The notes: generated from the letters alone by a model not told the origin. 64,000 nt of DNA from Macrostomum lignano (GCA_002269645.1 NIVC01001750.1:101253-165252), one strand, 5' to 3'. Shown: positions 28,727 to 63,127, counted from the stretch's first letter. Numbers and translations: made by a program.

Positions 28727-29021
28727 TGCTGGCGCCCCTTGGTGCTGGCGCCCCTTTGGTGCTGGCGACCCTTGGTGCTGGCACCCCTTGGTGCTGGCGC
28801 CCCTTTGGTGCTGGCGCCCCTTGGTGCTGGCGCCCCTTTGGTGCTGGCGCCCCTTTGGTGCTGGCGCCCCTTGGTGCTGGCGCCCCTTTGGTGCTGACGC
28901 CCCTTGGTGCTGGCGCCCCTTGGTGCTGGCGCCCCTTGGTGCTGGCGCCCCTTGGTGCTGGCGCCCCTTGGTGCTGGCGCCCCTTGGTGCTGGCGCCCCT
29001 TGGTGCTGGCGCCCCTTGGTG
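28727..29021 (+). repeat. 16-bp minisatellite (TTGGTGCTGGCGCCCC)n
   Basis: ~18 visible units with 17-bp variants; the reverse-complement array lies at 49840-50178. Confidence 0.96.
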
Positions 29022-29355: not shown

Positions 29356-30757
29356 TAGATTAAAAACCTTAGCAAACAGGTTTGGCGCCTCTGTCTAAAA
29401 AGTCTCTCGGACAAAAGCACAGTCTTTTTGTTTCCATATTGACTTGAAATTTCTCACCAATTTCTGTTCTGGGAATTCCGAGAGTTGTCAGCTTTCGCCG
29501 CGCAGTTTGTTAGCAGCTACCAATCTGTTCAAAATCTGCCCCGACGTCTGACTTTAATCTGCGACTCTATATGAATAAAATAATAAAATTGCAGCGCTAA
29601 ATTCCAGACGATGTGTGTGTGTGTGTGTGTGTGTGTTTGTGCATTAGGCATTTCTTGGGACAAGCGTGTATAAACTGACCCGTGCTATTAGGACCAAAAA
29701 TGTGTTGGGCCAGGCCCAATATGTGCGTCCCGACACTTCTAAAAATCAAGGCTACTAAATTAAAAAAATATTCGTTCGAACCGTCGTTCGATTCCCTTTT
29801 CAGAAACCAAACAACAGAAACCATATTTCTTACGATACATGAGTAATTTAGCGATTAACAATGTCCCAACAGGTTAGGAAAATCATGCAAAACCATTTTT
29901 GGTTCAATAGAACAATTGGGACTTTAATCATACTTTCATGTCTCGTCTTTTTATCATGTAATATTCTAAAAGGTCTACTTAAAGTAAAGCTGAATGCTTA
30001 ATAAGGAGCCTGTCTAAAGCTGAAGAGATCAGATATCATTTGGCAGCGTGGTCGTGGCTACATAAGTTTTCCAGGATGTTTTGCTGTAAGAACTGTTAGT
30101 TTATCTCATATACACTCTAATCTATAAAATTCTACATTCTAATTGTAAAATTTTCAACTCTGAAGTATACTAAAATTGGGACAATGTTCAACACTACTAA
30201 CACTTAGTAACTTTATCGCTCCACTACAGGTGTATTGTTTCTATTGTTCCAACGTACTCTTCTCCCTATTTCACCTATCAGCGATTCGCGAGCATATTAA
30301 TATAGAGCTTAAAATTTTAACAACCACAATTAAAATTCTTGCATTCTTTTTCTTACGGAGAGATTACAGAGCAAAATAAGCCCCTAGGCCTCAATCCCTC
30401 TCTCACAAAACGTTTTGGCCAGGCTAAACAGCTTGGTAAAGAACTTTGTCCCAGCTTCGATCGATAATCGAGCTAACGCGCGTGTGTACATTCTGAAGTG
30501 TGGGGACACGCACAAATAAAACCCAATCAACCTTCTCTCCAGGCCAATTGAGTGTACATTCAGAAGTGTTAGGACAGCCAAGCCACCCCTATTTAGAGCC
30601 CCCACAAACCTCTTTCAAAGGCCAATCGGAAGAACCAAACTAAATCTAGATTGAGACAATTTTGTACAATACATTGACTTCCCGATACTATTCTATTTAC
30701 TATAAGCCATTCTGAATTTGATCTAGTCAAAATACTCGTAGCTACATACTTAAAACA

Positions 30758-33700
30758 ATGCGGCAGAAGGCCGCTAAGAAGCTGAAGGCCCAAAGAAAAG
30801 TAAGAAAGAGGCCACTAGAGGTTAATGGCCATGCCAACCGAAGAGTGGAAGTGAAATTTGATAAAAGGCATCCCGCCTACGGCCAGACCAACGTTGTATA
30901 TCTAAGCGACCTAAAGTTTAAAGGTCAACTATGCCATGGAACACGAGTCGTGATGCAGTGGAAGGGAAAGGAGTGGAGCGGCACGGTGACTAACATGTAA
31001 GTGACATTAAAAAAAACTATATCTTCCTATACTAGTCTTATTGATTTCTAAATAACACAATTACGTGCACACTGTACTTTGCGTAAATTAACACAAATAT
31101 GTAATTTACTGCAGATACATTGATGCAGACCCACTACCGTTTGAAGCCGTTACTAAAGGGCTACCAACTCTAACAGGTATGTATGCCTATGTTAAACATT
31201 CAATTACTTATCCACGAAGAGTATACTCATAAAGACTATCAATCTTACTTCTTACTTATCAATGCCCGAAAAAATAGCAATGATGTTTAGGTGAAAAGAG
31301 ATCCCTTAAATCAATTTTCAATTTTATAGAGGAACAATTAGCAAATCGAAACGTCTCATATAGTGGCCGTGCGTTTGAAAAATACTACATTGGTAAGAAA
31401 AAACATAATACTCTAAATCTTAAATGTACCTCCGTAAAAGCCTTGAAATTCCCTTGAAAGCGAAAACTAAAACTTTGTAGAGATGGAAGAAAAGCAATTT
31501 CGCAGCATCTTCAAGCTTAAAAAACATCGATCCAATGCAGGTACTTTGACTGCAGAAACTGTATTTCACATAGAAAAGCACATATTAACTATATTATTTA
31601 CACATCAAACGTAGAAAAGAAAAGCACAAAAAAACATTTTTAGTGGCAACGGTCGGACAGAAAAACAAACACATTGCACTGGTATATACAAGCAAAGCTC
31701 AAATGTGGAGCAATCATTGGGACAACATTGTGCGGATGTGATGTTTGAGGCATTTATTGGGACGCACTTAATGGGACATGGAGTCTGTTATTTTTAACGC
31801 GGCTCTGGCTGTGACTAGAAAATGGTTCTTGTAGTTGAGCCAGCAAAGCATAGCTCTCTCTAAATAAACAAAACAGAATAGTAGCTTTCTAAGTAGCTCG
31901 AGTTTGAGTTTGGGAATCTGTGAAACTTTGCTCAGCCAATGATTACGTTCATGAAGTGTGTCTACACTACACAACTCCTTTCACACAGCTTCTGAAGTCG
32001 AGAGTTCCGCTGACGCGTCGCGGATTGAGCCCAACTTGAATGCGGTCTCCGCAAGCACAGACGCCACTGGTTCAAGCCTTGTCGCTGAACTAGCTAGTGC
32101 CATTCAGCCTGCTCAACAGCAGCCTCCAGCCGGCTTCAGCCAGACAGTTAGTCAGCTCCCAAGTGGTGCTACAGAAAGTCATTCAAGCGAAAGTGCAAAT
32201 GCTAAGAGGAAACGGCGATCTGCTCAAGGTGAGCACTGCATGAGCATTGCTTTGTCTGCATGAAGGTACATGTACTTTAAGCGGGAGTGTTTGGGAGCCT
32301 TGGCAAATAAGGCAATGGATATTTTGGGCGGGCATCGGCAGGACAGAAAAACACATACACTTGGGCACTTATTGGGACAACATTGTGCGGATGTGATGTT
32401 TGAGGCATTTATTGGGACGCACTTAATGGGACATGGAGTCTGTTATTTTTAACGCGGCTCTGGCTGTGACTAGAAAATGGTTCTTGTAGTTGAGCCAGCA
32501 AAGCATAGCTCTCTCTAAATAAACAAAACAGAATAGTAGCTTTCTAAGTAGCTCGAGTTTGAGTTTGGGAATCTGTGAAACTTTGCTCAGCCAATGATTA
32601 CGTTCATGAAGTGTGTCTACACTACACAACTCCTTTCACACAGCTTCTGAAGTCGAGAGTTCCGCTGACGCGTCGCGGATTGAGCCCAACTTGAATGCGG
32701 TCTCCGCAAGCACAGACGCCACTGGTTCAAGCCTTGTCGCTGAACTAGCTAGTGCCATTCAGCCTGCTCAACAGCAGCCTCCAGCCGGCTTCAGCCAGAC
32801 AGTTAGTCAGCTCCCAAGTGGTGCTACAGAAAGTCATTCAAGCGAAAGTGCAAATGCTAAGAGGAAACGGCGATCTGCTCAAGGTGAGCACTGCATGAGC
32901 ATTGCTTTGTCTGCATGAAGGTACATGTACTTTAAGCGGGAGTGTTTGGGAGCCTTGGCAAATAAGGCAATGGATATTTTGGGCGGGCATCGGCAGGACA
33001 GAAAAACACATACACTTGGGCACTTATTGGGACAACATTGTGCGGATGTGATGTTTGAGGCATTTATTGGGACGCACTTAATGGGACATGGAGTCTGTTA
33101 TTTTTAACGCGGCTCTGGCTGTGACTAGAAAATGGTTCTTGTAGTTGAGCCAGCAAAGCATAGCTCTCTCTAAATAAACAAAACAGAATAGTAGCTTTCT
33201 AAGTAGCTCGAGTTTGAGTTTGGGAATCTGTGAAACTTTGCTCAGCCAATGATTACGTTCATGAAGTGTGTCTACACTACACAACTCCTTTCACACAGCT
33301 TCTGAAGTCGAGAGTTCCGCTGACGCGTCGCGGATTGAGCCCAACTTGAATGCGGTCTCCGCAAGCACAGACGCCACTGGTTCAAGCCTTGTCGCTGAAC
33401 TAGCTAGTGCCATTCCGCCTGCTCAACAGCAGCCTCCAGCCGGCTTCAGCCAGACAGTTAGTCAGCTCCCAAGTGGTGCTACAGAAAGTCATTCAAGCGA
33501 AAGTGCAAATGCTAAGAGGAAACGGCGATCTGCTCAAGGTGAGCACTGCATGAGCATTGCTTTGTCTGCATGAAGGTACATGTACTTTAAGCGGGAGTGT
33601 TTGGGAGCCTTGGCAAATAAGGCAATGGATATTTTGGGCGGGCATCGGCAGGACAGAAAAACACATACACTTGGGCACTTATTGGGACAACATTGTGCGG

Positions 33701-36700
33701 ATGTGATGTTTGAGGCATTTATTGGGACGCACTTAATGGGACATGGAGTCTGTTATTTTTAACGCGGCTCTGGCTGTGACTAGAAAATGGTTCTTGTAGT
33801 TGAGCCAGCAAAGCATAGCTCTCTCTAAATAAACAAAACAGAATAGTAGCTTTCTAAGTAGCTCGAGTTTGAGTTTGGGAATCTGTGAAACTTTGCTCAG
33901 CCAATGATTACGTTCATGAAGTGTGTCTACACTACACAACTCCTTTCACACAGCTTCTGAAGTCGAGAGTTCCGCTGACGCGTCGCGGATTGAGCCCAAC
34001 TTGAATGCGGTCTCCGCAAGCACAGACGCCACTGGTTCAAGCCTTGTCGCTGAACTAGCTAGTGCCATTCCGCCTGCTCAACAGCAGCCTCCAGCCGGCT
34101 TCAGCCAGACAGTTAGTCAGCTCCCAAGTGGTGCTACAGAAAGTCATTCAAGCGAAAGTGCAAATGCTAAGAGGAAACGGCGATCTGCTCAAGGTGAGCA
34201 CTGCATGAGCATTGCTTTGTCTGCATGAAGGTACATGTACTTTAAGCGGGAGTGTTTGGGAGCCTTGGCAAATAAGGCAATGGATATTTTGGGCGGGCAT
34301 CGGCAGGACAGAAAAACACATACACTTGGGCACTTATTGGGACAACATTGTGCGGATGTGATGTTTGAGGCATTTATTGGGACGCACTTAATGGGACATG
34401 GAGTCTGTTATTTTTAACGCGGCTCTGGCTGTGACTAGAAAATGGTTCTTGTAGTTGAGCCAGCAAAGCATAGCTCTCTCTAAATAAACAAAACAGAATA
34501 GTAGCTTTCTAAGTAGCTCGAGTTTGAGTTTGGGAATCTGTGAAACTTTGCTCAGCCAATGATTACGTTCATGAAGTGTGTCTACACTACACAACTCCTT
34601 TCACACAGCTTCTGAAGTCGAGAGTTCCGCTGACGCGTCGCGGATTGAGCCCAACTTGAATGCGGTCTCCGCAAGCACAGACGCCACTGGTTCAAGCCTT
34701 GTCGCTGAACTAGCTAGTGCCATTCCGCCTGCTCAACAGCAGCCTCCAGCCGGCTTCAGCCAGACAGTTAGTCAGCTCCCAAGTGGTGCTACAGAAAGTC
34801 ATTCAAGCGAAAGTGCAAATGCTAAGAGGAAACGGCGATCTGCTCAAGGTGAGCACTGCATGAGCATTGCTTTGTCTGCATGAAGGTACATGTACTTTAA
34901 GCGGGAGTGTTTGGGAGCCTTGGCAAATAAGGCAATGGATATTTTGGGCGGGCATCGGCAGGACAGAAAAACACATACACTTGGGCACTTATTGGGACAA
35001 CATTGTGCGGATGTGATGTTTGAGGCATTTATTGGGACGCACTTAATGGGACATGGAGTCTGTTATTTTTAACGCGGCTCTGGCTGTGACTAGAAAATGG
35101 TTCTTGTAGTTGAGCCAGCAAAGCATAGCTCTCTCTAAATAAACAAAACAGAATAGTAGCTTTCTAAGTAGCTCGAGTTTGAGTTTGGGAATCTGTGAAA
35201 CTTTGCTCAGCCAATGATTACGTTCATGAAGTGTGTCTACACTACACAACTCCTTTGACACAGCTTCTGAAGTCGAGAGTTCCGCTGACGCGTCGCGGAT
35301 TGAGCCCAACTTGAATGCGGTCTCCGCAAGCACAGACGCCACTGGTTCAAGCCTTGTCGCTGAACTAGCTAGTGCCATTCCGCCTGCTCAACAGCAGCCT
35401 CCAGCCGGCTTCAGCCAGACAGTTAGTCAGCTCCCAAGTGGTGCTACAGAAAGTCATTCAAGCGAAAGTGCAAATGCTAAGAGGAAACGGCGATCTGCTC
35501 AAGGTGAGCACTGCATGAGCATTGCTTTGTCTGCATGAAGGTACATGTACTTTAAGCGGGAGTGTTTGGGAGCCTTGGCAAATAAGGCAATGGATATTTT
35601 GGGCGGGCATCGGCAGGACAGAAAAACACATACACTTGGGCACTTATTGGGACAACATTGTGCGGATGTGATGTTTGAGGCATTTATTGGGACGCACTTA
35701 ATGGGACATGGAGTCTGTTATTTTTAACGCGGCTCTGGCTGTGACTAGAAAATGGTTCTTGTAGTTGAGCCAGCAAAGCATAGCTCTCTCTAAATAAACA
35801 AAACAGAATAGTAGCTTTCTAAGTAGCTCGAGTTTGAGTTTGGGAATCTGTGAAACTTTGCTCAGCCAATGATTACGTTCATGAAGTGTGTCTACACTAC
35901 ACAACTCCTTTGACACAGCTTCTGAAGTCGAGAGTTCCGCTGACGCGTCGCGATTGAGCCCAACTTGAATGCGGTCTCCGCAAGCACAGACGCCACTGGT
36001 TCAAGCCTTGTCGCTGAACTAGCTAGTGCCATTCCGCCTGCTCAACAGCAGCCTCCAGCCGGCTTCAGCCAGACAGTTAGTCAGCTCCCAAGTGGTGCTA
36101 CAGAAAGTCATTCAAGCGAAAGTGCAAATGCTAAGAGGAAACGGCGATCTGCTCAAGGTGAGCACTGCATGAGCATTGCTTTGTCTGCATGAAGGTACAT
36201 GTACTTTAAGCGGGAGTGTTTGGGAGCCTTGGCAAATAAGGCAATGGATATTTTGGGCGGGCATCGGCAGGACAGAAAAACACATACACTTGGGCACTTA
36301 TTGGGACAACATTGTGCGGATGTGATGTTTGAGGCATTTATTGGGACGCACTTAATGGGACATGGAGTCTGTTATTTTTAACGCGGCTCTGGCTGTGACT
36401 AGAAAATGGTTCTTGTAGTTGAGCCAGCAAAGCATAGCTCTCTCTAAATAAACAAAACAGAATAGTAGCTTTCTAAGTAGCTCGAGTTTGAGTTTGGGAA
36501 TCTGTGAAACTTTGCTCAGCCAATGATTACGTTCATGAAGTGTGTCTACACTACACAACTCCTTTCACACAGCTTCTGAAGTCGAGAGTTCCGCTGACGC
36601 GTCGCGGATTGAGCCCAACTTGAATGCGGTCTCCGCAAGCACAGACGCCACTGGTTCAAGCCTTGTCGCTGAACTAGCTAGTGCCATTCCGCCTGCTCAA

Positions 36701-39700
36701 CAGCAGCCTCCAGCCGGCTTCAGCCAGACAGTTAGTCAGCTCCCAAGTGGTGCTACAGAAAGTCATTCAAGCGAAAGTGCAAATGCTAAGAGGAAACGGC
36801 GATCTGCTCAAGGTGAGCACTGCATGAGCATTGCTTTGTCTGCATGAAGGTACATGTACTTTAAGCGGGAGTGTTTGGGAGCCTTGGCAAATAAGGCAAT
36901 GGATATTTTGGGCGGGCATCGGCAGGACAGAAAAACACATACACTTGGGCACTTATTGGGACAACATTGTGCGGATGTGATGTTTGAGGCATTTATTGGG
37001 ACGCACTTAATGGGACATGGAGTCTGTTATTTTTAACGCGGCTCTGGCTGTGACTAGAAAATGGTTCTTGTAGTTGAGCCAGCAAAGCATAGCTCTCTCT
37101 AAATAAACAAAACAGAATAGTAGCTTTCTAAGTAGCTCGAGTTTGAGTTTGGGAATCTGTGAAACTTTGCTCAGCCAATGATTACGTTCATGAAGTGTGT
37201 CTACACTACACAACTCCTTTGACACAGCTTCTGAAGTCGAGAGTTCCGCTGACGCGTCGCGGATTGAGCCCAACTTGAATGCGGTCTCCGCAAGCACAGA
37301 CGCCACTGGTTCAAGCCTTGTCGCTGAACTAGCTAGTGCCATTCAGCCTGCTCAACAGCAGCCTCCAGCCGGCTTCAGCCAGACAGTTAATCAGCCCCAA
37401 GGTTGTCGCGAAATCGATCAGTTCCTTTGTGCACCTGTGGCGTATTGTTCTGAAGATGCAAACTTTGCGATTTTAAAACCGGTCTCGAATCCGAAGTCGT
37501 GCTGTGAGCCACATTTTGGGGCTCTGGCTTTTGCTGCTGATGATAGTGATCCATATCATCTGGAAAGCAATACTGGAACCGATTGTTCAGCTGGAGCTGT
37601 AGTGGGTTGCTCAAATTACGAGAATTTGGCCGCCGACAATTCGAATTTTTATCCTCAGATGAATGCCTTGTCTGTGGTTCAAGATTTTTCTGCGCATTCG
37701 ATGCCGTCCCAACTCGTTGATTTTGTAACTGCGAAAGCTGAAGATGGTGATCAAGTGACCTTTTCGGCTAATGTCAATGTTAGTTCCGCGCGGATTGAAG
37801 AAGAAAGTGTCTCAGTTACTCTACCTGTTTCCTTGAAGCCTGAGGATGACGCAGGATGCAGTGTTGTTTTGCAGAAGCTTGTCAGTTCGACGACAAAGCT
37901 TCATTACTGCAAATATTGTGGCAAAATGTTGACGAAAATCTCTCGGCACTACAAAACCGCTCATAAAGCAGAGTCTGACGTTAAGCGCTTGCAGCAGATC
38001 CGCCGTAAGTCCATTCGTAGAAAGGCATTTAAGGCCCTTGAAAGCGAAGGCGATTATATTCACAATAAAATGGTTTTGGCAAAACGAGAAGGTGAATTAA
38101 TAATTGCAAGGAGACAAAAGGACGATGAAAATTCTCCTGGGAGTTTTCTTCCCTGTCATCGATGCTTTCAATTCATAAAGAAGGATCTTCTCTACCGCCA
38201 CAGAAATGCATGCTCCGGTAGCCTATCTGAAATTATTAAGGAAGACGAGAATGACTCCGATGAAGACACTGAGAACTCTTCGCCCTCCGAGTCAGAGAGT
38301 GCAGAAGCGCGCCTAAAAAATCCTACGAACAATCACTACGTGCAGCTGTCTCGAATTCTGCTAAAAAATCCAGAGCCTGCTTCAAAACTTCTGGAACCAG
38401 ATTCGGAACTCTTTAAGACAGTTCTCTCAAGACTCATTTGTGATGATCTGTTTGATACAATCTGCAAAGATGAGCTCTTACTTCGTTTAGGTGATCGTTA
38501 TTTGTCTAAGCAAAAAAAGGTGAACCGGCAGCACGTGTCTAGTAAAATCAGGGATGCAGCTCGTGTTTTTATTCAGCTACAGCAGTTGCATGGTGATTAT
38601 AGCTTAAGACACTTTCTGCAACCACAGTATTTTGATGATTGGATCGAAGTTATCCGAAAGTTATCGAATGAGGCCCCAACATTCGCACTACGCATGGGTC
38701 ATTCAATACCGCATCTGTGCAATATCCTAATCGGTGAAGCGATTAGGACTTCTAATGATGGCCTTAAAAAGTCCGCATCTGACTTTCTTGAGCTGAAAAA
38801 TACTGAGTACCACCATCTCGTTACTGCGAAGAGCCTCAAGACAATAAGTGAAAGAGCAGCACTTGTGCAGGACTGTGTACCGCTGACGGACGACATAGTA
38901 AAACTTTCCACTTTTATGAAGTCGGCGATTGTCGATAAAATCGAAGAGCTCAAGACAGGAACATTGGATTCAAATGTTCCTTTGTTGTACCGTGAACTAG
39001 TCTACCTAATCATGACAAAACTAACTTTTTTCAACCGGCGCCGATCCAGTGAGATTTCTCAAATGGTAATGGCGATGTTAGATGCAGCTTCGGCATCTCA
39101 CACGCAGGATGACCTGCATCAGTATTTGACGCCACTCGAGAAGGAACTCGCCAGCAGGTTAAAGGTCATAAATATATCAGGCAAAAGAGGACGATCTGTG
39201 CCTATCGTTATCGATCGAATTTGTTGGGATGGACTGATGTGCCTAAAAGACTGTCGCGAGGCTGCCGGTGTAAGCCGAAAGAACGTATTTGTGTTTGCGA
39301 TTCCTGGCTATGAACAATCCGTCTACAGATGTCCTGTGGCAATCGACAAAGTAGTGAAAATGAGCTCACTCCAACTGCAACGAGCGGATCTCCTTCGCTC
39401 AAGATTTTTAAGGAAGCATTGTGCGACTGTTTCGCAACTTCTTGACTTAAAAGACAATGAGCTAGATTGGCTAGCTCGCCATCTCGGCCATGATATTACT
39501 GTCCACAGACAGTTCTACAGATTACATCAAAATACTCTCGAGCTAGCAAAGGTTTCGAAGATTTTGGAGTTGATGGAGAGTGGGAACCTGAAGAAATTTA
39601 AAGGAAAGGGTCTGGAAGAAATAACATTAGAAGATTTATCAGAGCCGCCGTTGGATGACCATGATGAGACAGCAGAGTTATCGGCGGTGCCGGACACTTC

Positions 39701-40485
39701 GGCCACAACAGCTGCTTCGACTTCGGCCACAACAGCTGCTTCGACTTCGGCCACAACAGTTGTTTCGACTTCGCCAACTTTCGCTTTGGGAACTGGTTCA
39801 GCCGCTACAACTAAAACAAGCGCAAAGAGACGCACAAAATCTGGTGAGTCAGTATATAGCTTAATTTGATTCATGCAGATACAAATATTTTTTACTGCTC
39901 AAATAGATTGTTTATAAGAGGTTAGATATATTTTTCTGATCGCATTTTATCATATGTTAACGGTATATAATCGCATAGTGTCTAGCGAATCGTATGCGAT
40001 TAACTCAGTCAAAGTACATGCATTTACTGGAGTTGAAGAAAAAAGAAATCGCGTGAACATCGCATAGATACTCGTATAAGTTCATTTTGCCTGGGGCTTT
40101 TACTGTCCAAAAAAAACTTATGCAAATGCAAACATTTCTAAGCAGAGTGCACAATGCACATCTTAAAATTTCCAAATCATTTGGCCCTTTTAATTGTATG
40201 CTAAGTTAATTATAAGAATTAAAACTTTTTGTGGACATGTTTTGCATACTTTCTGTGAACGTAAGCAGCAACCTCTTAGTCTATAAAATATGTGCTACCA
40301 TTACAGCAAAGAAGCTGACCGACAGCCAAAAAAGCGACTTGCGCAAGGCATTTGCCAGCTTTCTAGCCAGCGGGGATCTTCCTGGCAAGCAAGTCATTTT
40401 AGAGCTTCGACCCGAATCTGTTGCTGCTGTTGACTGGCGCCAAATTAAAGACAATTTGCGCGTTGCGCTTTCAAAAAAGAAATAG
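30758..40485 (+). CDS. Spliced tyrosine-recombinase-family protein with two zinc-finger-like motifs (Crypton-like or domesticated element)
   Basis: Exons 30758-30996, 31115-31176, 31330-31392, 31481-31540; eight cassette exons starting 31989, 32644, 33299, 33954, 34609, 35264, 35919 (239 nt), 36573; then 37228-39843 and 40307-40485; phases all compatible. Catalytic-type motifs FFNRRRSSEI (R), GKRGRSVP (K), RFLRKH (HxxR position with His replaced), LGHDITVHRQFY (H, Y). CKYC-x9-H-x4-H and CHRC-x11-H-x3-C motifs. ~1072 aa without cassettes, ~1632 aa with the seven intact cassettes. Confidence 0.8.
31716..37389 (+). repeat. 655-bp tandem repeat, ~8.7 copies, each one 240-nt exon plus a 415-nt intron
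   Basis: Identical ORFs recur at 31958, 32613, 33268, 33923, 34578, 35233, (35888), 36542, 37197; each unit has ...CACAG|CTTCTGAA...GCTCAAG|GTGAGC splice sites. Confidence 0.97.
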
Positions 40486-41164
40486 CTAGTCGAAATTTCT
40501 ATTTTAAGAAAAGCAAATATTTAACTTTAGCTAATTTTAGCTAATTGGCTTACTTTAGCTCACAGATTCTAGAACAGCTAGATGAGCCACTGAAGCACAG
40601 CTATATACAACAGCTGAAATAAATGACTTTGATAACTTTAGAAGCCCAAGCTTGCAGGCGTAAACAACTTGCTGATTGGTCCAGCCATAATGTACATTAG
40701 CCACTGAAATGTACATGGCAGATTTACCCTGGAACTACCGAGAAAGGCAATAAAAATTGGGTGGCGGGGCGGGGGTAGAGGTTCTGTGTGGAATTTGAGG
40801 GTTTAAGCTTGGGGGGTAAAAGCCAATAAATAAACCTTGCCTTAGTTTGTCTTCAAAACTTCATTAAAATGCCTCGGTTAACTTAAACTACTAAACTGAA
40901 AGTACCTTGCAGGCAAATGTGCTGAGTGAATCATCTAGTTTGTTCTAGTATCTGTGGTTTAATTACTAATTAAAGCTTAATGGAAGACAGGCAAAATTTG
41001 TAAAAATCCTTGGATCAAAAACTTTTTGCGGCTGAAATAACTAGTTACTAGATACTAGTTGCATAGCTCGAAGCTACTATTAGGTCGTTGATTCCGCGTG
41101 TCGAGCACAATTCTCTAATTTGTTTTTTTTAATAGCCACCTGGCTTAAAAACTGTGTTGTCATT

Positions 41165-41970
41165 CATTCAAAAATTTTATCACCACCTGCTCTAAACATT
41201 GTGTTTCTACTTATTCAACGATTTTATTCGCCATCTGCTCTAAACATTGTGTTTCTACTTATTCAACGATTTTATTCGCCATCTGCTCTAAACATTGTGT
41301 TTCTACTTATTCAACCATTTTATTCGCCACCTGCTCTAAACATTGTGTTTCTACTTATTCAACCATTTTATTCGCCACCTGCTCTAAACATTGTGTTTCT
41401 ACTTATTCAACCATTTTATTCGCCACCTGCTCTAAACATTGTGTTTCTACTTATTCAACGATTTTATTCGCCACCTGCTCTAAACATTGTGTTTCTACTT
41501 ATTCAACCATTTTATTCGCCACCTGCTCTAAACATTGTGTTTCTACTTATTCAACCATTTTATTCGCCACCTGCTCTAAACATTGTGTTTCTACTTATTC
41601 AAAAATTTTATCGCCACCTGCTCTAAACATTGTGTTTCTACTTATTCAACCATTTTATTCGCCACCTGCTCTAAACATTGTGTTTCTACTTATTCAACCA
41701 TTTTATTCGCCACCTGCTCTAAACATTGTGTTTCTACTTATTCAACCATTTTATTCGCCACCTGCTCTAAACATTGTGTTTCTACTTATTCAACCATTTT
41801 ATTCGCCACCTGCTCTAAACATTGTGTTTCTACTTATTCAACCATTTTATTCGCCACCTGCTCTAAACATTGTGTTTCTACTTATTCAACCATTTTATTC
41901 GCCACCTGCTCTAAACATTGTGTTTCTATTTATTCAACCATTTTATTCGCCACCTGCTCTAAACATTGTT
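41165..41970. repeat. 48-bp minisatellite (CTGCTCTAAACATTGTGTTTCTACTTATTCAACCATTTTATTCGCCAC)n
   Basis: ~17 visible units; 16-aa periodicity in the PPALNIVFLLIQPFYS ORFs. Confidence 0.96.
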
Positions 41971-42234
41971 TTTATTTATTCAAAACTTTTTTATTACAAA
42001 CATTCAAACATAAGTTGCAACTTTTTAAAAAAAATAAATTTGTTTCCCTTCAGTTTTGTTCCGTTTTCCAAAAGCCTCTTTATTTGTGGTGCCTCTTTAT
42101 TTTACTTTATGAATTAAACATTCGCATATAAAATGATGGAAGCGTTCAGAAATTCTTCTATCTGGTTGATACATCCACTGGTTATTTATAGGCCTAGATA
42201 TACTTCTATGGTAAAATTGTTAGGGCAGCCCTTC

Positions 42235-42652
42235 CACACTAGCTATGGTGGGATTGTTGGGACAGCCCTATGCACACTGGCTATGGTGGGATTGTTGGGA
42301 CAGCCCTATGCACACTGGCTATGGTGGGATTGTTGGGACAGCCCTATGCACACTGGCTATGGTGGGATTGTTGGGACAGCCCTATGCACACTGGCTATGG
42401 TGGGATTGTTGGGACAGCTCTATCCACACTAGCTTTGGTGGAATTGTTGGGACAGCCCTATGCACACTGGCTATGGTGGAATTGTTGGGACAGCCCTATG
42501 TACACTGGCTATGCTGGAATTGTTGGGACAGCCCTATGTACACTGGCTATGGTGGAATTGTTGGGACAGCCCTATGTACACTGGCTATGCTGGAATTGTT
42601 GGGACAGCCCTATGTACACTGGCTATGCTGGAATTGTTGGGACAGCCCTATA
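42235..42652. repeat. 38-bp minisatellite (CTATGGTGGGATTGTTGGGACAGCCCTATGCACACTGG)n
   Basis: ~11 visible units. Confidence 0.94.
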
Positions 42653-43439
42653 CTATAGTGTGTGCTGGCTTCTGCTTCTGCTATAGTGTGGTTCATTTCC
42701 GCATCCTTTTACGTAGCATTCTGTGGGTCCGAATAGCTGACATGTACCTTTTGAGTAATTCTAGTGATTGTGTCATAATCAATAAAGTACATTTTTATGA
42801 ACAGTGGAGTTTCGCTACAGAATTGTTTTTTCCCAGTGGCACTAAATGTAGCAAATTTTGTTTATTCAGATCGTAAAATTTTTTTGATATGTGTCAATGT
42901 CGTTTGTTTTCGATAACCTTAAAGTCCCTTGCCATTTACCATCCTGTCTTCTATAATCTATGATCGCTGAAATTATCTGGTGAAATTTGACGCGCTGATA
43001 TTATTGCCTTAAGTGGAATTCAGCAAGACACCAGGGTTTTTTAATTCTGTTTTAGACAAGTATACATGTACAATCTGTTGTGAGTTCAATGCACCTCGAA
43101 AAATGCTTTCCAACTGTTTTCAGTAAGCCAAAAGCATGTTGTCAATAAAAATCGATTTGGTGGGTTGAAAATTGCCTGTGTGGGGACGTGTGTGTGTGTG
43201 ATTTTTCGTGTGTCGAAGCAGTCCCAATATGTGCAAGCTTTTGCACACTTGGCCAATAAGTGCCTCGTGCACGTTTGTGTGTGTGTGTTCGTGCACTTTT
43301 TCCGACAGCAAAATATCGCCGAGAATAAATAAACAATTTTTTCTACCATGCACTGCGCAGTGGCCTCACAAATTGCTGTTGGAGTCACGAGAATGCAAAT
43401 TGACTGGTGAAGTTTGTAGTTTAAAGTACTGACTGCTGT

Positions 43440-43764: not shown

Positions 43765-44560
43765 CAGTGGCGCCCACTAAGAGACAGGGGCGCCCACCAA
43801 GAGACAGAGGCGCCCACCAAGAGACAGGGACGCCAACCGAGAGACAGGGACGCCAACCAAGAGACAGGGGCGCACACCAAGAGACAGAGGCGCCCACCAA
43901 AAGACAGGGACGCCAACCGAGAGACAGCTGGGCGCCAACCAAGAGACAGCTGGGCGCCAACCAAGAGACAGGGGCGCACACCAAGAGACAGAGGCGCCCA
44001 CCAAAAGACAGGGACGCCAACCGAGAGACAGCTGGGCGCCAACCAAGAGACAGCTGGGCGCCAACCAAGAGACAGGGGCGCCCACCAAGAGACAGAGGCG
44101 CCCACCAAGAGACAGGGGCGCCCACCAAGAGACAGAGGCGCCCACCAAGAGACAGGGACGCCAACCGAGAGACAGGGACGCCAACCGAGAGACAGCTGGG
44201 CGCCAACCAAGAGACAGAGGCGCCAACCAAGAGACAGGGGCGCCAACCGAGGGACAGCTGGGCGCCAACCAAGAGACAGCTGGGCGCCAACCAAGAGACA
44301 GGGGCGCCCACCAAGAGACAGAGGCGCCCACCAAGAGACAGGGGCGCCCACCAAGAGACAGAGGCGCCCACCAAGAGACAGGGACGCCAACCGAGAGACA
44401 GGGACGCCAACCGAGAGACAGCTGGGCGCCAACCAAGAGACAGCTGGGCGCCAACCAAGAGACAGGGGCGCCAACCAAGAGACAGGGGCGCCAACAGAGG
44501 GACAGGGGCGCCAACCGAGAGACAGGGGCGCCAACCAAGAGACAGGGGTGTCCACCAAGA
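43765..44560. repeat. 20-21-bp minisatellite (GCGCCAACCAAGAGACAGGG-type variants)
   Basis: ~38 visible units with several recurring variants. Confidence 0.95.
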
Positions 44561-45125: not shown

Positions 45126-46335
45126 AAGGCGCGTCGCCACCGGGGATACAGGGGGACATGCCAATGCTGTGTCCCCCGCACCTTGTGAGTCGTTGTATAT
45201 TTTTTCTTTAGGGCGCCAAAATAAAGCGACTTCGGCACCAAAATGAGTACCTGCGGCGCTAAAATGAGTGCCTGCGGCGCTAGAAGGAGTGCCTGCGGCG
45301 CTAAAAAAAGTGCCTGCGGCGCTAAAATGAGTGCCTGCGGCGCTAAAATCAGTGCCTGTGGTGCTAAAATGAGTGCCTGCGGCGCTAAAATGAGTACCTG
45401 TGGCGCCAAAATGAGTGTGTGCGGCGCTAAAAGGAGTGCCTGCGGCGCCAAAATGAGTGCATGCGGCGCTAAAATGAGTGCATGCGGCGTCAAAATGAGT
45501 GCCTGTGGCGCTAAAATGAGTGCCTGCGGCGCTAAAATGAGTGCCTGCGGCGCCAAAATGAGTGCATGCGGCGCCAAAATGAGTACCTGCGGCGCTAAAA
45601 TGAGTACCTGCGGCGCCAAAATGAGTACCTGCGGCGCTAAAATGAGTGCCTGCGGCGCTAAAATGAGTGCCTGCGGCGCTAAAATGAGTGCATGCGGCGC
45701 CAAAATGAGTGCCTGCGGCGCTAAAATGAGTTCCTGCGGCGCTAAAATCAGTGCCTGTGGTGCTAAAATGAGTGCCTGCGGCGCTAAAATGAGTACCTGT
45801 GGCGCCAAAATGAGTGCCTGCGGCGCTAAAAGGAGTGCCTGCGGCGCTAAAATGAGTGCCCGCGGCGCTAAAATCAGTGCCTGTGGTGCTAAAATGAGTG
45901 CCTGCGGCGCTAAAATGAGTACTTGCGGCGCTAAAATGAGTGCCTGCGGCGCTAAAATGAGTTCCTGCGGCGCTAAAATCAGTGCCTGTGGTGCTAAAAT
46001 GAGTGCCTGCGGCGCTAAAATGAGTACCTGTGGCGCCAAAATGAGTGCCTGCGGCGTACCTATGGCGCCAAAATGAGTGCCTGCGGCGCAAAAATGAGTG
46101 CCTGCGGCGCTAAAATGAGTACCTGTGGCGCCAAAATGAGTGCCTGTGGTGCTAAAATGAGTTCCTGTGGTGCTAAAATGAGTACCTGCGGCGCTAAAAG
46201 GAGTGCCTGCGGCGTACCTATGGCGCCAAAATGAGTGCCTGCGGCGCCAAAATTAGTGCCAAAATTTAGTCATGTACATGTTGAATTCTTGGCTGTGTCC
46301 CCCCACCCACCATAAAATCCATGGCGACGCCCCTG
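45126..46335 (+). mobile_element. MITE-like element with imperfect 13-bp TIRs enclosing the 21-bp minisatellite (copy 2)
   Basis: Left end AAGGCGCGTCGCC versus reverse complement of the right end CAGGGGCGTCGCC; subterminal GGGGGACA...TGTCCCCC hairpin; internal array 45235-46260; 3' end shared with copy 1. No convincing TSD. Confidence 0.65.
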
Positions 46336-49182
46336 GTATAAAGTCAGTAATGTTAGACTAAGATGCAAAAATGTTTTGTTTTACTCTAATATATACGTCA
46401 GTGGGAGGCAAAAAAATTTAAATGCATCAACAAATCGAACGGCTAATATGTAATTTCATTTTCTCTCGATAATTTACAACTTAATATCGACACACACTTT
46501 GGAAATAGATCTTTGTAGGAAAGAACTATACGCAGAATTACGAGTATAACAAAAAATAATAAAATCATTAGACTTGGAAACTTCTGTAGCCATTGGAAGT
46601 TTCAGAAAATTGTAAGTGCCCCCTAAGAGGGTCGCCAGAGCTAGTCTATCAGCACTGTAACTTCAGCCATTGCAGAGTAGATTGCGGTGATCTTCCATTT
46701 AGAATTTATTGAAAGTCAGAACGCCAGTTTTTCAAACCGGTTATGGATGATAATTTTCTTCATAATATTCTCTGTGGGGCTAAAATAAAAGCCTGCGGCG
46801 CTAAAATGAGTGTCTGTGGGGCTAAAATGAAAGCCTGCGGCGCTAAAATGAGTGTCTGTGGGGCTAAAATGAAAGCCTGCGGCGCTAAAATGAGTGCATG
46901 CGGCGCCAAAATGAGTGTCTGTGGGGCTAAAATGAAAGCCTGTGGCGCTAAAATGAGTTCCTGCGGCGCTAAAATGAGTGTCTGTGGGGCTAGCATGAAA
47001 GCCTGCGGCGCTAAAATGAGTGTCTGTGGGGCTAAAATGAAAGCCTGCGGCGCTAAAATGAGTGCCCGCGGGGCTAAAATCAGTGCCTGTGGTGCTAAAA
47101 TGAGTGCCTGCGGCGCTAAAATGAGTACTTGCGGCGCTAAAATGAGTGCCTGCGGCGCTAAAATGAGTTCCTGCGGCGCTAAAATCAGTGCCTGTGGTGC
47201 TAAAATGAGTGCCTGCGGCGCTAAAATGAGTACCTGTGGCGCCAAAATGAGTGCCTGCGGCGTACCTATGGCGCCAAAATGAGTGCCTGCGGCGCAAAAA
47301 TGAGTGCCTGCGGCGCTAAAATGAGTACCTGTGGCGCCAAAATGAGTGCCTGTGGTGCTAAAATGAGTTCCTGTGGTGCTAAAATGAGTACCTGCGGCGC
47401 TAAAAGGAGTGCCTGCGGCGTACCTATGGCGCCAAAATGAGTGCCTGCGGCGCCAAAATTAGTGCCAAAATTTAGTCATGTACATGTTGAATTCTTGGCT
47501 GTGTCCCCCACCCACCATAAAATCCATGGCGACGCCCCTGGTATAAAGTCAGTAATGTTAGACTAAGATGCAAAAATGTTTTGTTTTACTCTAATATATA
47601 CGTCAGTGGGAGGCAAAAAAATTTAAATGCATCAACAAATCGAACGGCTAATATGTAATTTCATTTTCTCTCGATAATTTACAACTTAATATCGACACAC
47701 ACTTTGGAAATAGATCTTTGTAGGAAAGAACTATACGCAGAATTACGAGTATAACAAAAAATAATAAAATCATTAGACTTGGAAACTTCTGTAGCCATTG
47801 GAAGTTTCAGAAAATTGTAAGTGCCCCCTAAGAGGGTCGCCAGAGCTAGTCTATCAGCACTGTAACTTCAGCCATTGCAGAGTAGATTGCGGTGATCTTC
47901 CATTTAGAATTTATTGAAAGTCAGAACGCCAGTTTTTCAAACCGGTTATGGATGATAATTTTCTTCATAATATTCTCTGTGGGGCTAAAATAAAAGCCTG
48001 CGGCGCTAAAATGAGTGTCTGTGGGGCTAAAATGAAAGCCTGCGGCGCTAAAATGAGTGTCTGTGGGGCTAAAATGAAAGCCTGCGGCGCTAAAATGAGT
48101 GCATGCGGCGCCAAAATGAGTGTCTGTGGGGCTAAAATGAAAGCCTGTGGCGCTAAAATGAGTTCCTGCGGCGCTAAAATGAGTGTCTGTGGGGCTAGCA
48201 TGAAAGCCTGCGGCGCTAAAATGAGTGTCTGTGGGGCTAAAATGAAAGCCTGCGGCGCTAAAATGAGTGCCCGCGGGGCTAAAATCAGTGCCTGTGGTGC
48301 TAAAATGAGTGCCTGCGGCGCTAAAATGAGTACTTGCGGCGCTAAAATGAGTGCCTGCGGCGCTAAAATGAGTTCCTGCGGCGCTAAAATCAGTGCCTGT
48401 GGTGCTAAAATGAGTGCCTGCGGCGCTAAAATGAGTACCTGTGGCGCCAAAATGAGTGCCTGCGGCGTACCTATGGCGCCAAAATGAGTGCCTGCGGCGC
48501 AAAAATGAGTGCCTGCGGCGCTAAAATGAGTACCTGTGGCGCCAAAATGAGTGCCTGTGGTGCTAAAATGAGTTCCTGTGGTGCTAAAATGAGTACCTGC
48601 GGCGCTAAAAGGAGTGCCTGCGGCGTACCTATGGCGCCAAAATGAGTGCCTGCGGCGCCAAAATTAGTGCCAAAATTTAGTCATGTACATGTTGAATTCT
48701 TGGCTGTGTCCCCCACCCACCATAAAATCCATGGCGACGCCCCTGGTATAAAGTCAGTAATGTTAGACTAAGATGCAAAAATGTTTTGTTTTACTCTAAT
48801 ATATACGTCAGTGGGAGGCAAAAAAATTTAAATGCATCAACAAATCGAACGGCTAATATGTAATTTCATTTTCTCTCGATAATTTACAACTTAATATCGA
48901 CACACACTTTGGAAATAGATCTTTGTAGGAAAGAACTATACGCAGAATTACGAGTATAACAAAAAATAATAAAATCATTAGACTTGGAAACTTCTGTAGC
49001 CATTGGAAGTTTCAGAAAATTGTAAGTGCCCCCTAAGAGGGTCGCCAGAGCTAGTCTATCAGCACTGTAACTTCAGCCATTGCAGAGTAGATTGCGGTGA
49101 TCTTCCATTTAGAATTTATTGAAAGTCAGAACGCCAGTTTTTCAAACCGGTTATGGATGATAATTTTCTTCATAATATTCTC
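45840..49182 (+). repeat. 1205-bp tandem segmental repeat (~2.8 copies): 21-bp array + element 3' end + ~440 bp unique DNA
   Basis: Identical ORFs at 46716/47921 and 46743/47948; the unique stretch GATCTTCCATTTAGAATTT...CATAATATTCTC occurs three times (~46690, ~47895, ~49100). Confidence 0.95.
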
Positions 49183-49839: not shown

Positions 49840-50178
49840 CACCAAGGGGCGCCAGCACCAAGGGGCGCCAGCACCAAGGGGCGCCAGCACCAAGGGGCGC
49901 CAGCACCAAGGGGCGCCAGCACCAAGGGGCGCCAGCACCAAGGGGCGCCAGCACCAAGGGGCGCCAGCACCAAGGGGCGCCAGCACCAAGGGGCGCCAGC
50001 ACCAAGGGGCGCCAGCACCAAGGGGCGCCAGCACCAAGGGGCGCCAGCACCAAGGGGCGCCAGCACCAAGGGGCGCCAGCACCAAGGGGCGCCAGCACCA
50101 AGGGGCGCCAGCACCAAGGGGCGCCAGCACCAAGGGGCGCCAGCACCAAGGGGCGCCAGCACCAAGGGGCGCCAGCAC
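49840..50178 (-). repeat. 16-bp minisatellite (CACCAAGGGGCGCCAG)n, reverse complement of the 28727 array
   Basis: ~21 homogeneous units. Confidence 0.97.
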
Positions 50179-50575
50179 CAGCTTTAGAATGAGACAAATT
50201 TTTTACTAAAACATGCTGCAGAAAGTGACCAGAGAGGACTTGGTTTGTAAGCATTCCAGATTTAGGCTCTAATTAGTACTCCTTGAAGTTGCAGAGAGCC
50301 CGTCTGGATCGGCTCGCTATTGGCTGCAGAGCCAAATGTGAATTATCCAAAAATAGAGTTGCGCATGGCGTGCAGGCGCTCCTGCACTCCCCCCAAAGAA
50401 AATGAGGGAGAGAGAAACGAGAGGTGCAGGGAGCGGAATAGAGTATATCATAGGCCGCTGAATTTCTTCAGCAGCTAAAGCACAACACATTGCTTTAACA
50501 AGGATTCCAAGTTTGGAGAGCAGAACAGAATCGCTACAGTTGCCTTACAGAGACTCTGCCAACGCATCTGATTAA

Positions 50576-56500: not shown

Positions 56501-59500
56501 TAGAAAGCTTGAAATGCAATAAAAAAAGAATAAAAAGCTCTGCTTTCTTTGCGGACCTTCTTTTTAGGGTCCCGACTTTTTGTTTTATTGTCAAGTCTCC
56601 AGGTGGAAACAGACGGCTTTAATTGTTTCTTTATTGTCTTTTTTGAAGGTAACCCAACGGTCATTTATAACTGTGGTACTGAAGGGAGTAGGGGCAGTGA
56701 AGGGAGTAGGGGCAGCGAAGGGAGTTGGGGCAGCGAAGGGAGTAGGGGCAGTGAAGGGAGTAGGGGCAGTGAAGGGAGTAGGGGCAGTGAAGGGAGTAGG
56801 GGCAGTGAAGGGAGTAGGGGCAGTGAAGGGAGTAGGGGCAGTGAAGGGAGTAGGGGCAGTGAAGGGAGTAGGGGCAGTGAAGGGAGTAGGGGCAGTGAAG
56901 GGAGTAGGGGCAGTGAAGGGAGTAGGGGCAGTGAAGGGAGTAGGGGCAGTGAAGGGAGTAGGGGCAGTGAAGGGAGTAGGGGCAGTGAAGGGAGTAGGGG
57001 CAGTGAAGGGAGTAGGGGCAGTGAAGGGAGTAGGAGCAGTGAAGGGAGTATGGGATACATATTCGTGAACTTCATGCAAATAGGTTAATATTTTCATCTA
57101 AAAGCCAGCCAAAAAGCCAGAGTGGCTCGTGCAATTTTTCCTCCATCTAAACCGGAAACGAGAAATTTTAGCGTTTGTTAAAATTCGGGGGTTTGCAATA
57201 ATTGCATTGCGGCCTGTGCGTGGGCGGTTCGGGATGACAAACGCTTGCAGTTGTTAGTGGGCTGAGTGGGCGTTGGCGTGCTGGGGTGAATCATGCCCAT
57301 ATTTGCAAATACTGTATGGATTCACATGGACATCTGTCTGTGCGTACCTGGACTGGGGTAAGCACAATAGTTCAGAAATTTCATTTCCAATTGCTAGAAG
57401 TTAAAAATACTCAAAAGTATCGTTAGTTTCGAAAGTAAATTATATTTAATTTAAACACGCCGGAAGGAGCCAAACGAGACAAAGTCAGTTGCGAAAAGCA
57501 GGCAGCGGCCGAGAAAGCGGATCCCAGTGGATCAAGCGAAGCGTTTATTTATTAGTTTAAACGAGTTATTATTTATTGGTTCGTAAAAAGGAAATAAAAA
57601 AATTGAGAAATGGCGGCGGAGCCAAGCCGGGCCGGGTGCAGAGGCTTTAAGCTGGCCGGCGCGGCCAACACCCCCACACCTCAACCCCCCGCCAAAGTAC
57701 AGCGATATGTACAGCGGCACCCTCCGGCGCGTCTAACACCCTTACTCAGAGAGTAACGATTGCATCAATTAGTTATAAGAAACGGGTACATTATAAAGTA
57801 TAAACTGTAAAGTACTAGGAAATTCAAGGAAATTATGTTGTGTGCAGCAAGCCCTATAGTCCATGAGAGATCATGGATGACTTTCTCTGTCCTGCGCTGT
57901 TAAGCTCTAGATAGTCTAGATAGCGTTTGAGCATATCAACCCCAGCAGTGCGTCTGGGGTTCTTCACCCAGAAGGGCAATCTGCATGATTAATTTCATTT
58001 GTTCAGCCCAGTCGGTCTCATTCATCACATTCGCCAGACTGGTCAGCTATGCTCGTGTTGCATTAATTTTTTCTGGTGCACTTTTGTAAAATGAAAAATG
58101 CTCCCAGCATCGGTCCTGCCTTCGGAAAAATGTCCAACAGTCAGACTAATAATAGCGGTGAAGATGGACATATTTTTGGTGATTCTGTCTCTAACTTGGT
58201 GTCCTTATCTCAGATTGGGTGTCTTTATCTCAGATTGGGTGTCCTTATCTCTAACTTGGTGTCCTTATCTCAGATTTGGTGTCCTTACCTCAGATTGGAT
58301 GTCCTTATCTCAGATTGGGTGTCTTTATCTTAGATTTGGTGTCCTTATCTCAGATTGGGTGTCCTTATCTCAGATTTGGTGTCCTTATCTCAGATTGGGT
58401 GTCTTTATCTTAGATTTGGTGTCCTTATCTCAGATTGGGTGTCCTTATCTCAGATCGGGTGTCCTTATTTCAGATTTGGTGTCCTTATTTCAGATTTGGT
58501 GTCCTTATCTCAGATTTGGTGTTCTTATCTCAGATTTGGTATCTTTTGAGTAGTACTTTTGAGCGTTCCATGTACTATTGAAAATAGTGGATTTCATTTA
58601 CATCTTCATGCATTATTGGACCGTGAGCTGATAACAGACACAGCCTTGTTCCATCCGAGCGTTACAAACTTGAATTGGCTACTATTATAGTTAATCTACA
58701 CTCAATATCATTGTAGGAGTTGAATAGTCAGAGAATCCTGTCAATATTGGTTGCCTTTGGCACCCGGGATGCTTCAATTTAGCCAAGAAGCTCAAGAAGC
58801 TATACCTGAATCGTAAAGTATGAGAATAATAGTAATTCATGTAATTCACAACAGCACTTCCTTTATTAGGTACAGACGCTTTATTGTGTGGAACAACAAT
58901 GAAACGAATTAATAGTTAATGGAATTTAATAATAGGTTTCATTATGTACTTAATAAATATTGAATAGAACTTATATCCAGTCATAAAACTTGATAGAGCA
59001 GTGCGTACTTTTTTGAGGAGAGGTCGACTATATACTCCCAAAGTACTCCAAAGTACGTACGTGCATTCAGTTAGTAAATTTACAATAACGTTTACCCTCC
59101 TACCTGTATTAGGTCGTAGTGGCATTGCTTCGCGATTATACATCTCGCTTTCACGGTCCCTAGCCATGCCCATCCCCCTCTACTGTCTCCCCTCTCTCCC
59201 TCTCTCCCCTCACTCACTTTCTCCCCTCACTCACTTTCTCCCCTCACTCACTTTCTCCCCCTTTCTCCTATCTCCCTCTCTCTCCCTGTCTCTCCCTCTC
59301 TCCTATCTCCCCCTCTCTCCTATCTCCCCTCTCTCCTATACCCCCTCTCTCCTATCTCCCCCTCTCTCCTATCTCCCCCTCTCTCCTATCTCCCCCTCTC
59401 TCCTACCCCCCCTCTTCCTATCTCCCCTCTCTCCTATCCCCCCACTCACTTTCTCCCCTCACTCACTTTCTCCCCTCACTCACTTTCTCCCCCTTTCTCC

Positions 59501-63019: not shown

Positions 63020-63127
63020 ACTGATGAACTGATTGATTGATTTATTGATTGATTGATTAATTGATTGTCTGATTGATTTATTAATTGATTGATTAATTGA
63101 TTGATTAATTGATTGACTGATTGACTA

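Follow-up and report, generated by a model that had tools for sequence, protein, structure and literature searches.

What a tandem array of nearly identical exons is doing within a gene for a recombinase is the question raised by this locus. The stretch of DNA analyzed here (64,000 nt, hereafter the window) was identified, via its match as locus L003, as part of contig NIVC01001750.1 from the Macrostomum lignano assembly GCA_002269645.1. A first-pass annotation made from the sequence alone had regarded the array as a device tuning the N-terminal arm of the recombinase; the transposon context and the terminal motif repeated in each unit had been missed. It is this context, a repeat-saturated genome and units that multiply the element's own terminal motif, that shifts the reading away from tuning. 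We give an even chance to the explanation that the array is a DNA-level feature in which terminal-motif sites are reiterated, that it is resized by unequal or site-specific exchange, and that its exon is an in-frame passenger.

The array consists of nine copies in register from position 31710 onward, spaced by 655 bp (654 bp in one instance) and 99-100% identical to each other, with the similarity of the ninth copy ending at about 37392-37401. It was missed by TRF because the maximum period there is 500, and chance is no issue since the units are near-identical over 5.7 kb. Splice acceptors of the form ...cacag/CTTCTG stand at 31989, 32644, 33299, 33954, 34609, 35264, 35919, 36573 and 37228, and donors of the form CAAG/gtgagc close the cassette exons from 32228 through 36812; as the split codon is G/CT, the introns are in phase 1 on both sides. 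Each cassette encodes 80 aa (S 21%, A 19%, Q, E and P 7.5% each) with the basic C-terminal end AKRKRRSAQ, and the ninth copy is the start of the 2.6-kb recombinase exon, into which it continues uninterrupted. These results confirm what had been annotated on three points, namely 655-bp tandem units with a 240-nt phase 1-1 exon between CACAG and GTGAGC sites (at nine registered copies), the 80-aa Ser/Ala/Gln-rich cassette with an NLS-like (nuclear localization signal) end, and the direct passage of the ninth copy into the catalytic exon. The array and its cassettes are as follows.

31710-37392, plus strand: tandem array of eight full 655-bp units and a ninth (original), partial copy
31989-32228, plus strand: cassette exon 1, 240 nt, Q variant
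32644-32883, plus strand: cassette exon 2, 240 nt, Q variant
33299-33538, plus strand: cassette exon 3, 240 nt, P variant
33954-34193, plus strand: cassette exon 4
34609-34848, plus strand: cassette exon 5
35264-35503, plus strand: cassette exon 6
35919-36157, plus strand: cassette exon 7, 239 nt, with a 1-bp deletion leading to a frameshift and stop codons
36573-36812, plus strand: cassette exon 8

A complete exon with splice sites, a length divisible by three and symmetric phase was found for seven of the eight cassettes. Cassette 7 departs from this with its 239 nt, frameshift and stop codons, so that the claim that any subset of cassettes would splice in frame does not hold. The deletion of cassette 7 is also present in the third-from-last cassette of element copy L001, and since the window and L001 have it at the same relative position, the frameshifted cassette is probably real.

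The gene that carries the array is part of a mobile element. An identical 971-aa model occurs at six loci of GCA_002269645.1, and the similarity of the loci to the window, at the level of ~99.8%, starts at 29612 and stops at 43288, beyond which the flanks are unrelated. Because L004 and L005 have a common flank, the loci represent at least five distinct insertion sites, and since multiple insertion sites share sharp ends, the gene is to be assigned to a transposon and not to the host; a host gene or a domesticated recombinase was rejected for the same reason. The limits and non-coding features of the element are given below.

29612-43288, plus strand: whole mobile element, about 13.7 kb, from the homology limits common to the window and five other loci of the same assembly (99.8%)
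29612-29636, plus strand: left (TG)n boundary repeat, of variable length among copies
29648-29661, plus strand: left terminal 14-nt motif GCATTTCTTGGGAC, 12 nt inside the left TG run
41127-41983, plus strand: 48-bp tandem array of 17.9 copies in the 3' non-coding part of the element, from a tandem-repeat scan
42206-42651, plus strand: 38-bp tandem array of 11.8 copies, each unit with the core TTGGGAC, from repeat and motif scans
43221-43234, minus strand: right terminal 14-nt motif (GCACATATTGGGAC on this strand), about 40 nt inside the right TG run
43276-43288, plus strand: right (TG)n boundary repeat, from the comparison of copies

At its left end the element reads (TG)n-TTTGTGCATTAGGCATTTCTTGGGAC... 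and at its right end ...GTCCCAATATGTGCAAGC...CTCGTGCACGTTTG-(TG)n. The TG runs are of unequal length among the copies and several flanks themselves go on as TG runs; in all copies compared, no duplication other than (TG)n at both ends was detected in the flanks. The recombinase gene is the sole gene of the element. Its remaining open reading frames (ORFs) are repeat-derived, the ORF survey of the element detected neither a reverse transcriptase nor any other sizeable ORF, and Rfam and tRNA searches returned zero matches, for which reason a small-RNA gene array (SL or 5S type) within the unit was rejected. The circle-integration model predicts a direct repeat of the target word flanking the element (PMC3212892; PMC9977147), and a recombinase-only element with its target word as a direct repeat at both ends therefore follows the pattern of Cryptons. 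The presence of (TG)n at both ends would fit circle excision and re-integration by recombination within TG microsatellites. Judged by its sequence, the element appears to be a young, multi-copy DNA transposon that is Crypton-like in architecture and encodes only a tyrosine recombinase.

Some further observations concern single copies. In the window copy only, the 8-mer TCGTGCAC flanks the right TG run on both sides (43263-43296), the layout being ...CC TCGTGCAC GTT (TG)6.5 TCGTGCAC TTTTTCC; the flanks of the other copies have no second TCGTGCAC. GTGCAC is a palindrome, and GTGCAT is found directly after the left-end TG run. GTGCAC arms could flank a TG crossover region, with a matching arm in the target, or this could be a coincidence. 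Copy L002 departs from the window by ~1 kb between the 48-bp and 38-bp arrays.

The link between the ends of the element and the array is a short motif. Of its core TTGGGAC, the 13.7-kb element contains 35 copies and the remaining 50 kb only 3, and alignment of the sites yielded the 14-mer GCAYWTMWTGGGAC, which has 28 exact matches in the window where 0 are expected: 26 lie in the array, at three per unit, and one lies inside each end of the element, these two forming an inverted pair ~40-55 bp from the ends. The 38-bp array at 42206-42651 has the core in each of its units, and another four occurrences lie within the element's first 600 bp. Because both ends share the motif and arrays in subterminal and internal position repeat it, it looks like a protein-binding site. 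Following this, we propose that the 5.7-kb array is an internal tandem duplication in the transposon's single intron-containing gene, that it reiterates terminal-motif sites, presumed to be bound by the recombinase, and that it would grow and shrink by unequal or site-specific recombination between units. That every unit is by chance an exon that can be spliced without a change of frame would let the array persist in autonomous copies, and the additional 80-aa modules would represent a tolerated passenger rather than a tuned linker. It is thus a role in cis that we infer for the array.

The unit itself is a composite of four parts. The first comprises 279 nt of the 3' end of the intron and holds three direct copies of the 14-nt motif, and the second corresponds to the first ~165 nt of the main (recombinase) exon. 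The third part, an orphan of ~175 nt made up of the last ~75 nt of the cassette (KRKRR included), the donor and ~100 nt of intron, supplies ...AKRKRRSAQ, the phase-1 GT donor and the 5' end of the intron, while the fourth, of ~35 nt, matches the old intron at the following feature.

31645-31709, plus strand: diverged counterpart, in the old intron, of the ~35-70 nt that end the unit, with the degenerate motif copy GCAATCATTGGGAC

Local alignment of 31645-31681 with 32331-32369 gave ~33/39 identical positions and a score of 35 as compared to a shuffle maximum of 29, in accordance with the diverged motif annotated for the upstream intron. Local alignments of the orphan (32166-32335) to the preceding exons and intron, the remainder of the main exon, the downstream intron and the remaining parts of the element and of the window did not exceed shuffles; a lenient gapped alignment to the main exon was suggestive and failed the shuffle test. 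In its position the orphan resembles exon 4 with its donor, as both end in a basic run followed by G/gt in phase 1, with a sequence similarity short of significance. As the first-pass annotation had suggested, the unit may go back to an older duplication that was amplified again at a later time.

Copy number differs between copies of the element, as the first-pass annotation had expected. Complete arrays with unique sequence on both sides have 8 cassettes in the window and 9 each in L001 and L002, truncated arrays have no fewer than 13, 16 and 10, and models from the earlier ML2 assembly contain 7, 8, 8, 9, 13, 16+ and 17+ cassettes. Among the 65 units, substitutions are confined to two sites, namely exon position 118 (A/C, leading to Q/P) and intron position 649 (C/G). 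The Q form is found at the edges of arrays and the P form within them, which is the pattern expected from unequal exchange. The exon part (7 single-base indels in 15.6 kb) and the intron part (10 in 27 kb) have about the same indel frequency. In the 65 units, the cassettes gave no indication of purifying selection, a test of low power because the units are so young.

With respect to expression, the following exons were assigned to the gene.

30758-30996, plus strand: putative exon 1, 239 nt, with ATG and the basic cluster KKLKAQRKVRKRP, from open frame and GT donor
31115-31176, plus strand: putative exon 2, 62 nt, from AG/GT sites and continuous frame
31330-31392, plus strand: putative exon 3, 63 nt, phase 1-1, from AG/GT sites and open frame
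31481-31540, plus strand: putative exon 4, 60 nt, phase 1-1, ending in KKHRSNA, from AG/GT sites and open frame
37228-39842, plus strand: main exon, 2.6 kb, with an N-terminal low-complexity region, two zinc-finger-like motifs and the core-binding and catalytic domains
about 37908-37976 and about 38154-38220, plus strand: zinc-finger-like motifs in the main exon
40307-40485, plus strand: last exon with stop codon; its C-terminal tail is kept in relative P0004

From the ATG at 30758, a single open frame runs through the four small exons and continues whether a cassette or the main exon follows, and by virtue of this frame exons 1-4 may belong to the same mRNA as the cassettes. No transcript-based model joining them to the cassettes was found; the sole database protein matching exons 1-4 is UniProt A0A1I8HCD9, a 78-aa ab initio model equal to exon 1 alone, and the peptide of exons 1-4 gave no domain and no PDB match. 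Use of the cassette junctions is supported by the GenBank annotation of the assembly, which is derived from RNA-seq via StringTie/TACO, a de novo transcriptome and TBONE (PMC5730564). The ORF is 100% identical to the GenBank entry 'hypothetical protein BOX15_Mlig014457g5, partial' from Macrostomum lignano, and this RNA-seq-derived model splices one cassette to the next, then to the main exon and finally to the last exon, reading ...AKRKRRSAQ/ASEVESS... twice before it passes through the main exon. PAA46037 and the entries identical to it hold one full and one partial cassette and are flagged as partial; since the cassettes are identical, their number in the mRNA is not countable from short reads. 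Outside the array, basic NLS-like clusters are also found: one is KKLKAQRKVRKRP in exon 1, and another lies where the main exon ends.

Two minor observations concern the protein models. Near the C-terminal end of the main exon, an in-frame repeat of 24 nt x 3.2 (39696-39773) encodes TSATTAAS three times. Eight UniProt ab initio models (A0A1I8J7S7, A0A1I8GMM9, A0A1I8GDZ6, A0A1I8J7T5, A0A1I8HFW1, A0A1I8J6G4, A0A1I8HBC5 and A0A1I8HCD9) consist (almost) of cassettes only or of exon 1 alone, with A0A1I8J6G4 extending through most of the main exon, and carry automatic names such as SPOC domain-containing, Kazal-like, Ribonuclease E/G, SANT and 50S ribosomal protein L24, none of which is supported by the sequence. 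For annotation, the cassette-only entries are to be regarded as transposon fragments with spurious names.

The annotation of the gene as encoding a recombinase is upheld by a tyrosine-recombinase fold and conserved catalytic residues. A homologue search with the whole 890-aa ORF gave 4 matches, swamped by the low-complexity repeat, and was rerun with the domain alone; the HMMER scan then detected 5297 representative clusters at E<=1e-3, 712 of them at E<=1e-30. The named relatives are 'uncharacterized' proteins of corals, sea anemones, sea cucumbers, crinoids, gastropods and beetles, and on these matches the protein family is taken to be very large and metazoan; no name for it was found in the databases searched. 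In an alignment of 44 sequences, R380 (FNRRRSGE), K427 (GKRGR.VP), R503 (KLRKY.AT), H529 and Y538 are invariant or near-invariant, and likewise H534, which together with H529 lies in LGHD...H. Their positions in the window are given here.

39042 (R), 39183 (K), 39411 (R), 39489 (H) and 39516 (Y), plus strand: catalytic residues

The distances R503-H529 and H529-Y538 are 26 and 9 residues. In Cre these spacings are 23 and 9; the order and spacing of residues in the family are Cre-like and correspond to the catalytic set of tyrosine recombinases. In place of the first His of HxxR the family has Thr and the window protein Arg, and because of this replacement the catalytic set is a pentad as in type IB topoisomerases. 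Pfam Phage_integrase (PF00589) is matched by 5 of the 44 relatives (best E 5.2e-7) and not by the window protein, for which Pfam and PDB sequence searches gave no informative match; a PDB sequence-profile search found no recombinase. The AlphaFold2 model reached a pLDDT of 81.6, and in a Foldseek search of the PDB XerH/XerD took the first 5 matches and 7 of the first 11, with type IB topoisomerases as the rest of the first 12, at a probability of 0.72-1.0 (~1 for the top matches), an E value of only 6e-3 and TM scores of 0.37-0.41. Taken together with the two zinc-finger-like motifs upstream of the recombinase domain, the model supports a protein predicted to combine zinc fingers with the core-binding and catalytic two-domain fold of tyrosine recombinases.

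Repeats N-terminal of the recombinase domain are also found in relatives. At least 13 of ~150 best representatives carry tandem peptide repeats there, unrelated to each other in sequence, with units of 21-67 aa in 2-15 copies (among them P0117, P0058, P0109, P0122, P0116, P0132, P0140 and P0141), and the unit of P0117 ends in ERKRKTSV. A few members have C-terminal repeats (P0085, P0105 and P0067). Two distant relatives from other organisms, L010 and L011, have a (TG)25 run 3-6 kb downstream of the gene (relevant stretches: L010 1-1068 and 8900-8968; L011 1-261 and 9183-9258). The N-terminal repeats of L010 correspond to a 93-bp DNA array within a single-exon ORF, (TG)25 lies 5.9 kb downstream, and the 9-mer TCCTGTCAA of the array occurs only once elsewhere in the locus, inverted and 11 nt from (TG)25 (0.07 expected). 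The L011 contig ends in (TG)25 with the 11-mer TGTCCTCCTAA 16 nt away, which is otherwise present only in a 95-bp array at the other end of the contig, there three times (0.004 expected). These parallels are suggestive only, because they come from single loci without mapped ends; they hint that TG targeting and reiterated terminal motifs may be traits of the family. In Littorina (L007) the upstream TG runs sit inside a 3.3-kb duplication, and no TG run was found in Holothuria (L008), which has only (TGTC)12, or in L009. A literature search found no paper on Cryptons in Macrostomum or on TG targeting by this recombinase family.

Several points weigh against the DNA-level explanation. The role given to the motif is read from its position, three copies of it were already present in the ancestral intron and a degenerate copy precedes the array, so that the multiplication of the motif could be a side effect of intron duplication. 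The 14-mer consensus was counted at the same sites from which it was derived, and independent of these are only the two ends, which were set from other loci and carry the inverted motif. The orientation of the motif relative to the array is unlike among the three species examined, L010 and L011 are single loci with unmapped ends, and the exact multiple of three, the symmetric phase and the clean NLS-like cluster would also fit selection at the protein level. The last of these points leads to the adaptive device proposed by the first-pass annotation, i.e., tuning of the length of a disordered N-terminal arm and of the number of NLS by copy-number variation and alternative splicing. In its favor, every unit brings an exon of (with the exception named) exactly 240 nt in phase 1-1, which has canonical splice sites and encodes a KRKRR cluster, the junctions are used in RNA-derived models, copy number is variable, and other family members have N-terminal repeats too, in part with basic clusters such as ERKRKTSV in P0117. 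However, alternative inclusion is without support, identical cassettes being uncountable by short reads, no signature of selection was found, two copies carry a frameshifted cassette, and NLS-like clusters exist outside the array already. Moreover, the repeat units of relatives are unrelated and mostly acidic or Ser-rich, hence no common protein function is evident. Adaptive tuning is thus regarded as very unlikely.

The frameshifted cassette tolerated in two copies would also fit a neutral by-product, in which a segment across the intron-exon boundary was duplicated in a genome that readily forms tandem repeats and was then multiplied through unequal crossing-over, without function in cis or in the protein, and in which only spliceable in-frame arrays are seen as these spare the element. 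The window is full of minisatellites, simple and tandem repeats make up 15% of the genome (PMC5730564), the units are almost identical and hence very young, and the motif copies pre-existed in the ancestral intron, all of which is in line with neutrality. By contrast, neutrality leaves unexplained why a terminus-adjacent motif is reiterated in the 5' arrays of relatives from other species and why the core of the motif fills the 38-bp array near the right end, and we hold it to be possible but somewhat improbable. That the array is an artefact, produced by a long-read assembler from one or two true copies, is hardly credible: several contigs (L004, L006) do have their start within the array, scattered 1-bp indels are concentrated toward the ends of contigs and PacBio data are common to both assemblies (PMC5730564), yet three contigs span whole arrays with unique sequence on both sides (8, 9 and 9 cassettes), variants within arrays are ordered (Q/P, C/G and the common deletion at the same relative position), and models from the earlier assembly count 7 to 17+. 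Finally, the array could have a dual job in a TG-targeting metazoan transposon family, as a reiterated recombinase-binding motif and as a repeat-built N-terminal arm, with units that are read through in relatives and spliced in as cassette exons in the flatworm. This combination seems unlikely to us; if it were true, a change in array length would alter the number of binding sites in cis and, together with it, the arm length in trans, and gain and loss of units might be driven by the recombinase through recombination between them.

Arrays of whole in-frame exons with variable copy number are known from host genes, namely kringle IV-2 of human LPA and the Olduvai units of NBPF. As in the window, the unit there is an intron plus an exon whose length is a multiple of three with symmetric phase, and copy number differs. 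Protein length scales with copy number in LPA and NBPF, whereas inclusion of all units is only putative here; furthermore, the gene here is that of a transposon recombinase, the units are of low complexity instead of a folded domain, and the intronic part carries the terminal motif. The remark that the design was not recognized among described elements therefore has to be restricted: since whole-exon coding variable-number tandem repeats are known in host genes (LPA KIV-2), such an array is not unprecedented, and what is new here is its position inside a transposon recombinase gene and its coupling to the terminal motif. Reiterated binding sites of mobile elements are likewise known from the subterminal repeats of En/Spm and Ac and the arm sites of phage lambda attP, where a short motif at both ends is reiterated in subterminal or internal arrays as it is here. 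Unlike in these systems, the array in the window lies within the recombinase gene and is, according to the RNA-seq-derived model, transcribed and spliced, and binding is predicted only.

Among DNA transposons, the closest architecture is that of Cryptons (Goodwin et al. 2003; Kojima & Jurka 2011, PMC3212892), of which CryptonF-1_cRei from Chlamydomonas is active (PMC9977147). In accordance with these, the element encodes a tyrosine recombinase and no reverse transcriptase, has introns in its gene and no long terminal repeats, and has at both ends a short direct repeat matching the target, the product expected from circle integration. Contrarily, the boundary here is a TG microsatellite instead of a 4-6-bp word, the recombinase domain is preceded by zinc fingers, an inverted 14-nt motif lies in subterminal position whereas animal Cryptons are reported to be without terminal repeats, and there are large internal tandem arrays, one of which overlaps coding exons. 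Moreover, PF12012/DUF3504 was matched by none of the 44 family members even at E<=5, as compared to E<=8e-12 for CryptonA proteins (PMC3212892), and because of this negative result the element is Crypton-like by architecture and is not placed in a described Crypton clade. Endogenous nimavirus tyrosine recombinases also integrate into simple repeats (PMC10871703). They resemble the protein described here in having C2H2 zinc-binding, SAM-like N-terminal and tyrosine-recombinase catalytic domains and a short tandem repeat as target; by contrast, they belong to giant viral genomes targeting (TAACC)n or rDNA, and the likeness is one of described architecture only (PMC10871703).

Active DNA transposons with a tyrosine recombinase have rarely been documented in animals, and this one is apparently very young. 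Its host is a flatworm model ready for transgenesis, with six identical protein models and ends cleanly mapped in TG microsatellites, and its family extends over thousands of sequence clusters in cnidarians, echinoderms, molluscs and beetles. If the terminal motif together with the TG core were the recombination site, a compact and testable eukaryotic system for site-specific integration would be at hand. Additionally, the arrays of 7 to 17+ units form a natural series bearing on the effects of reiterated sites or of a protein arm on transposition.

Further repeats were observed around the element. The 16-bp satellite TGCTGGCGCCCCTTGG is present at 28727-29021 and 49840-50180 in opposite orientations, 0.6 kb to the left and 6.5 kb to the right of the element, and a related GC-rich 20-bp satellite lies at 43765-44560. 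Long arrays of the 21-bp satellite AAATGAGTGCCTGCGGCGCTA, which is also found in the flanks of L004 and L005, occupy 1002-3558 and 45233-48671, the right-hand one being organized in a higher-order repeat of ~1.2 kb (self-matches offset by ~1206). A CT-rich 17-bp satellite at 59186-60556 causes the strong negative GC skew of the region 58000-62000, and a (TGAT)n run of ~240 copies (63030-63992) closes the window.

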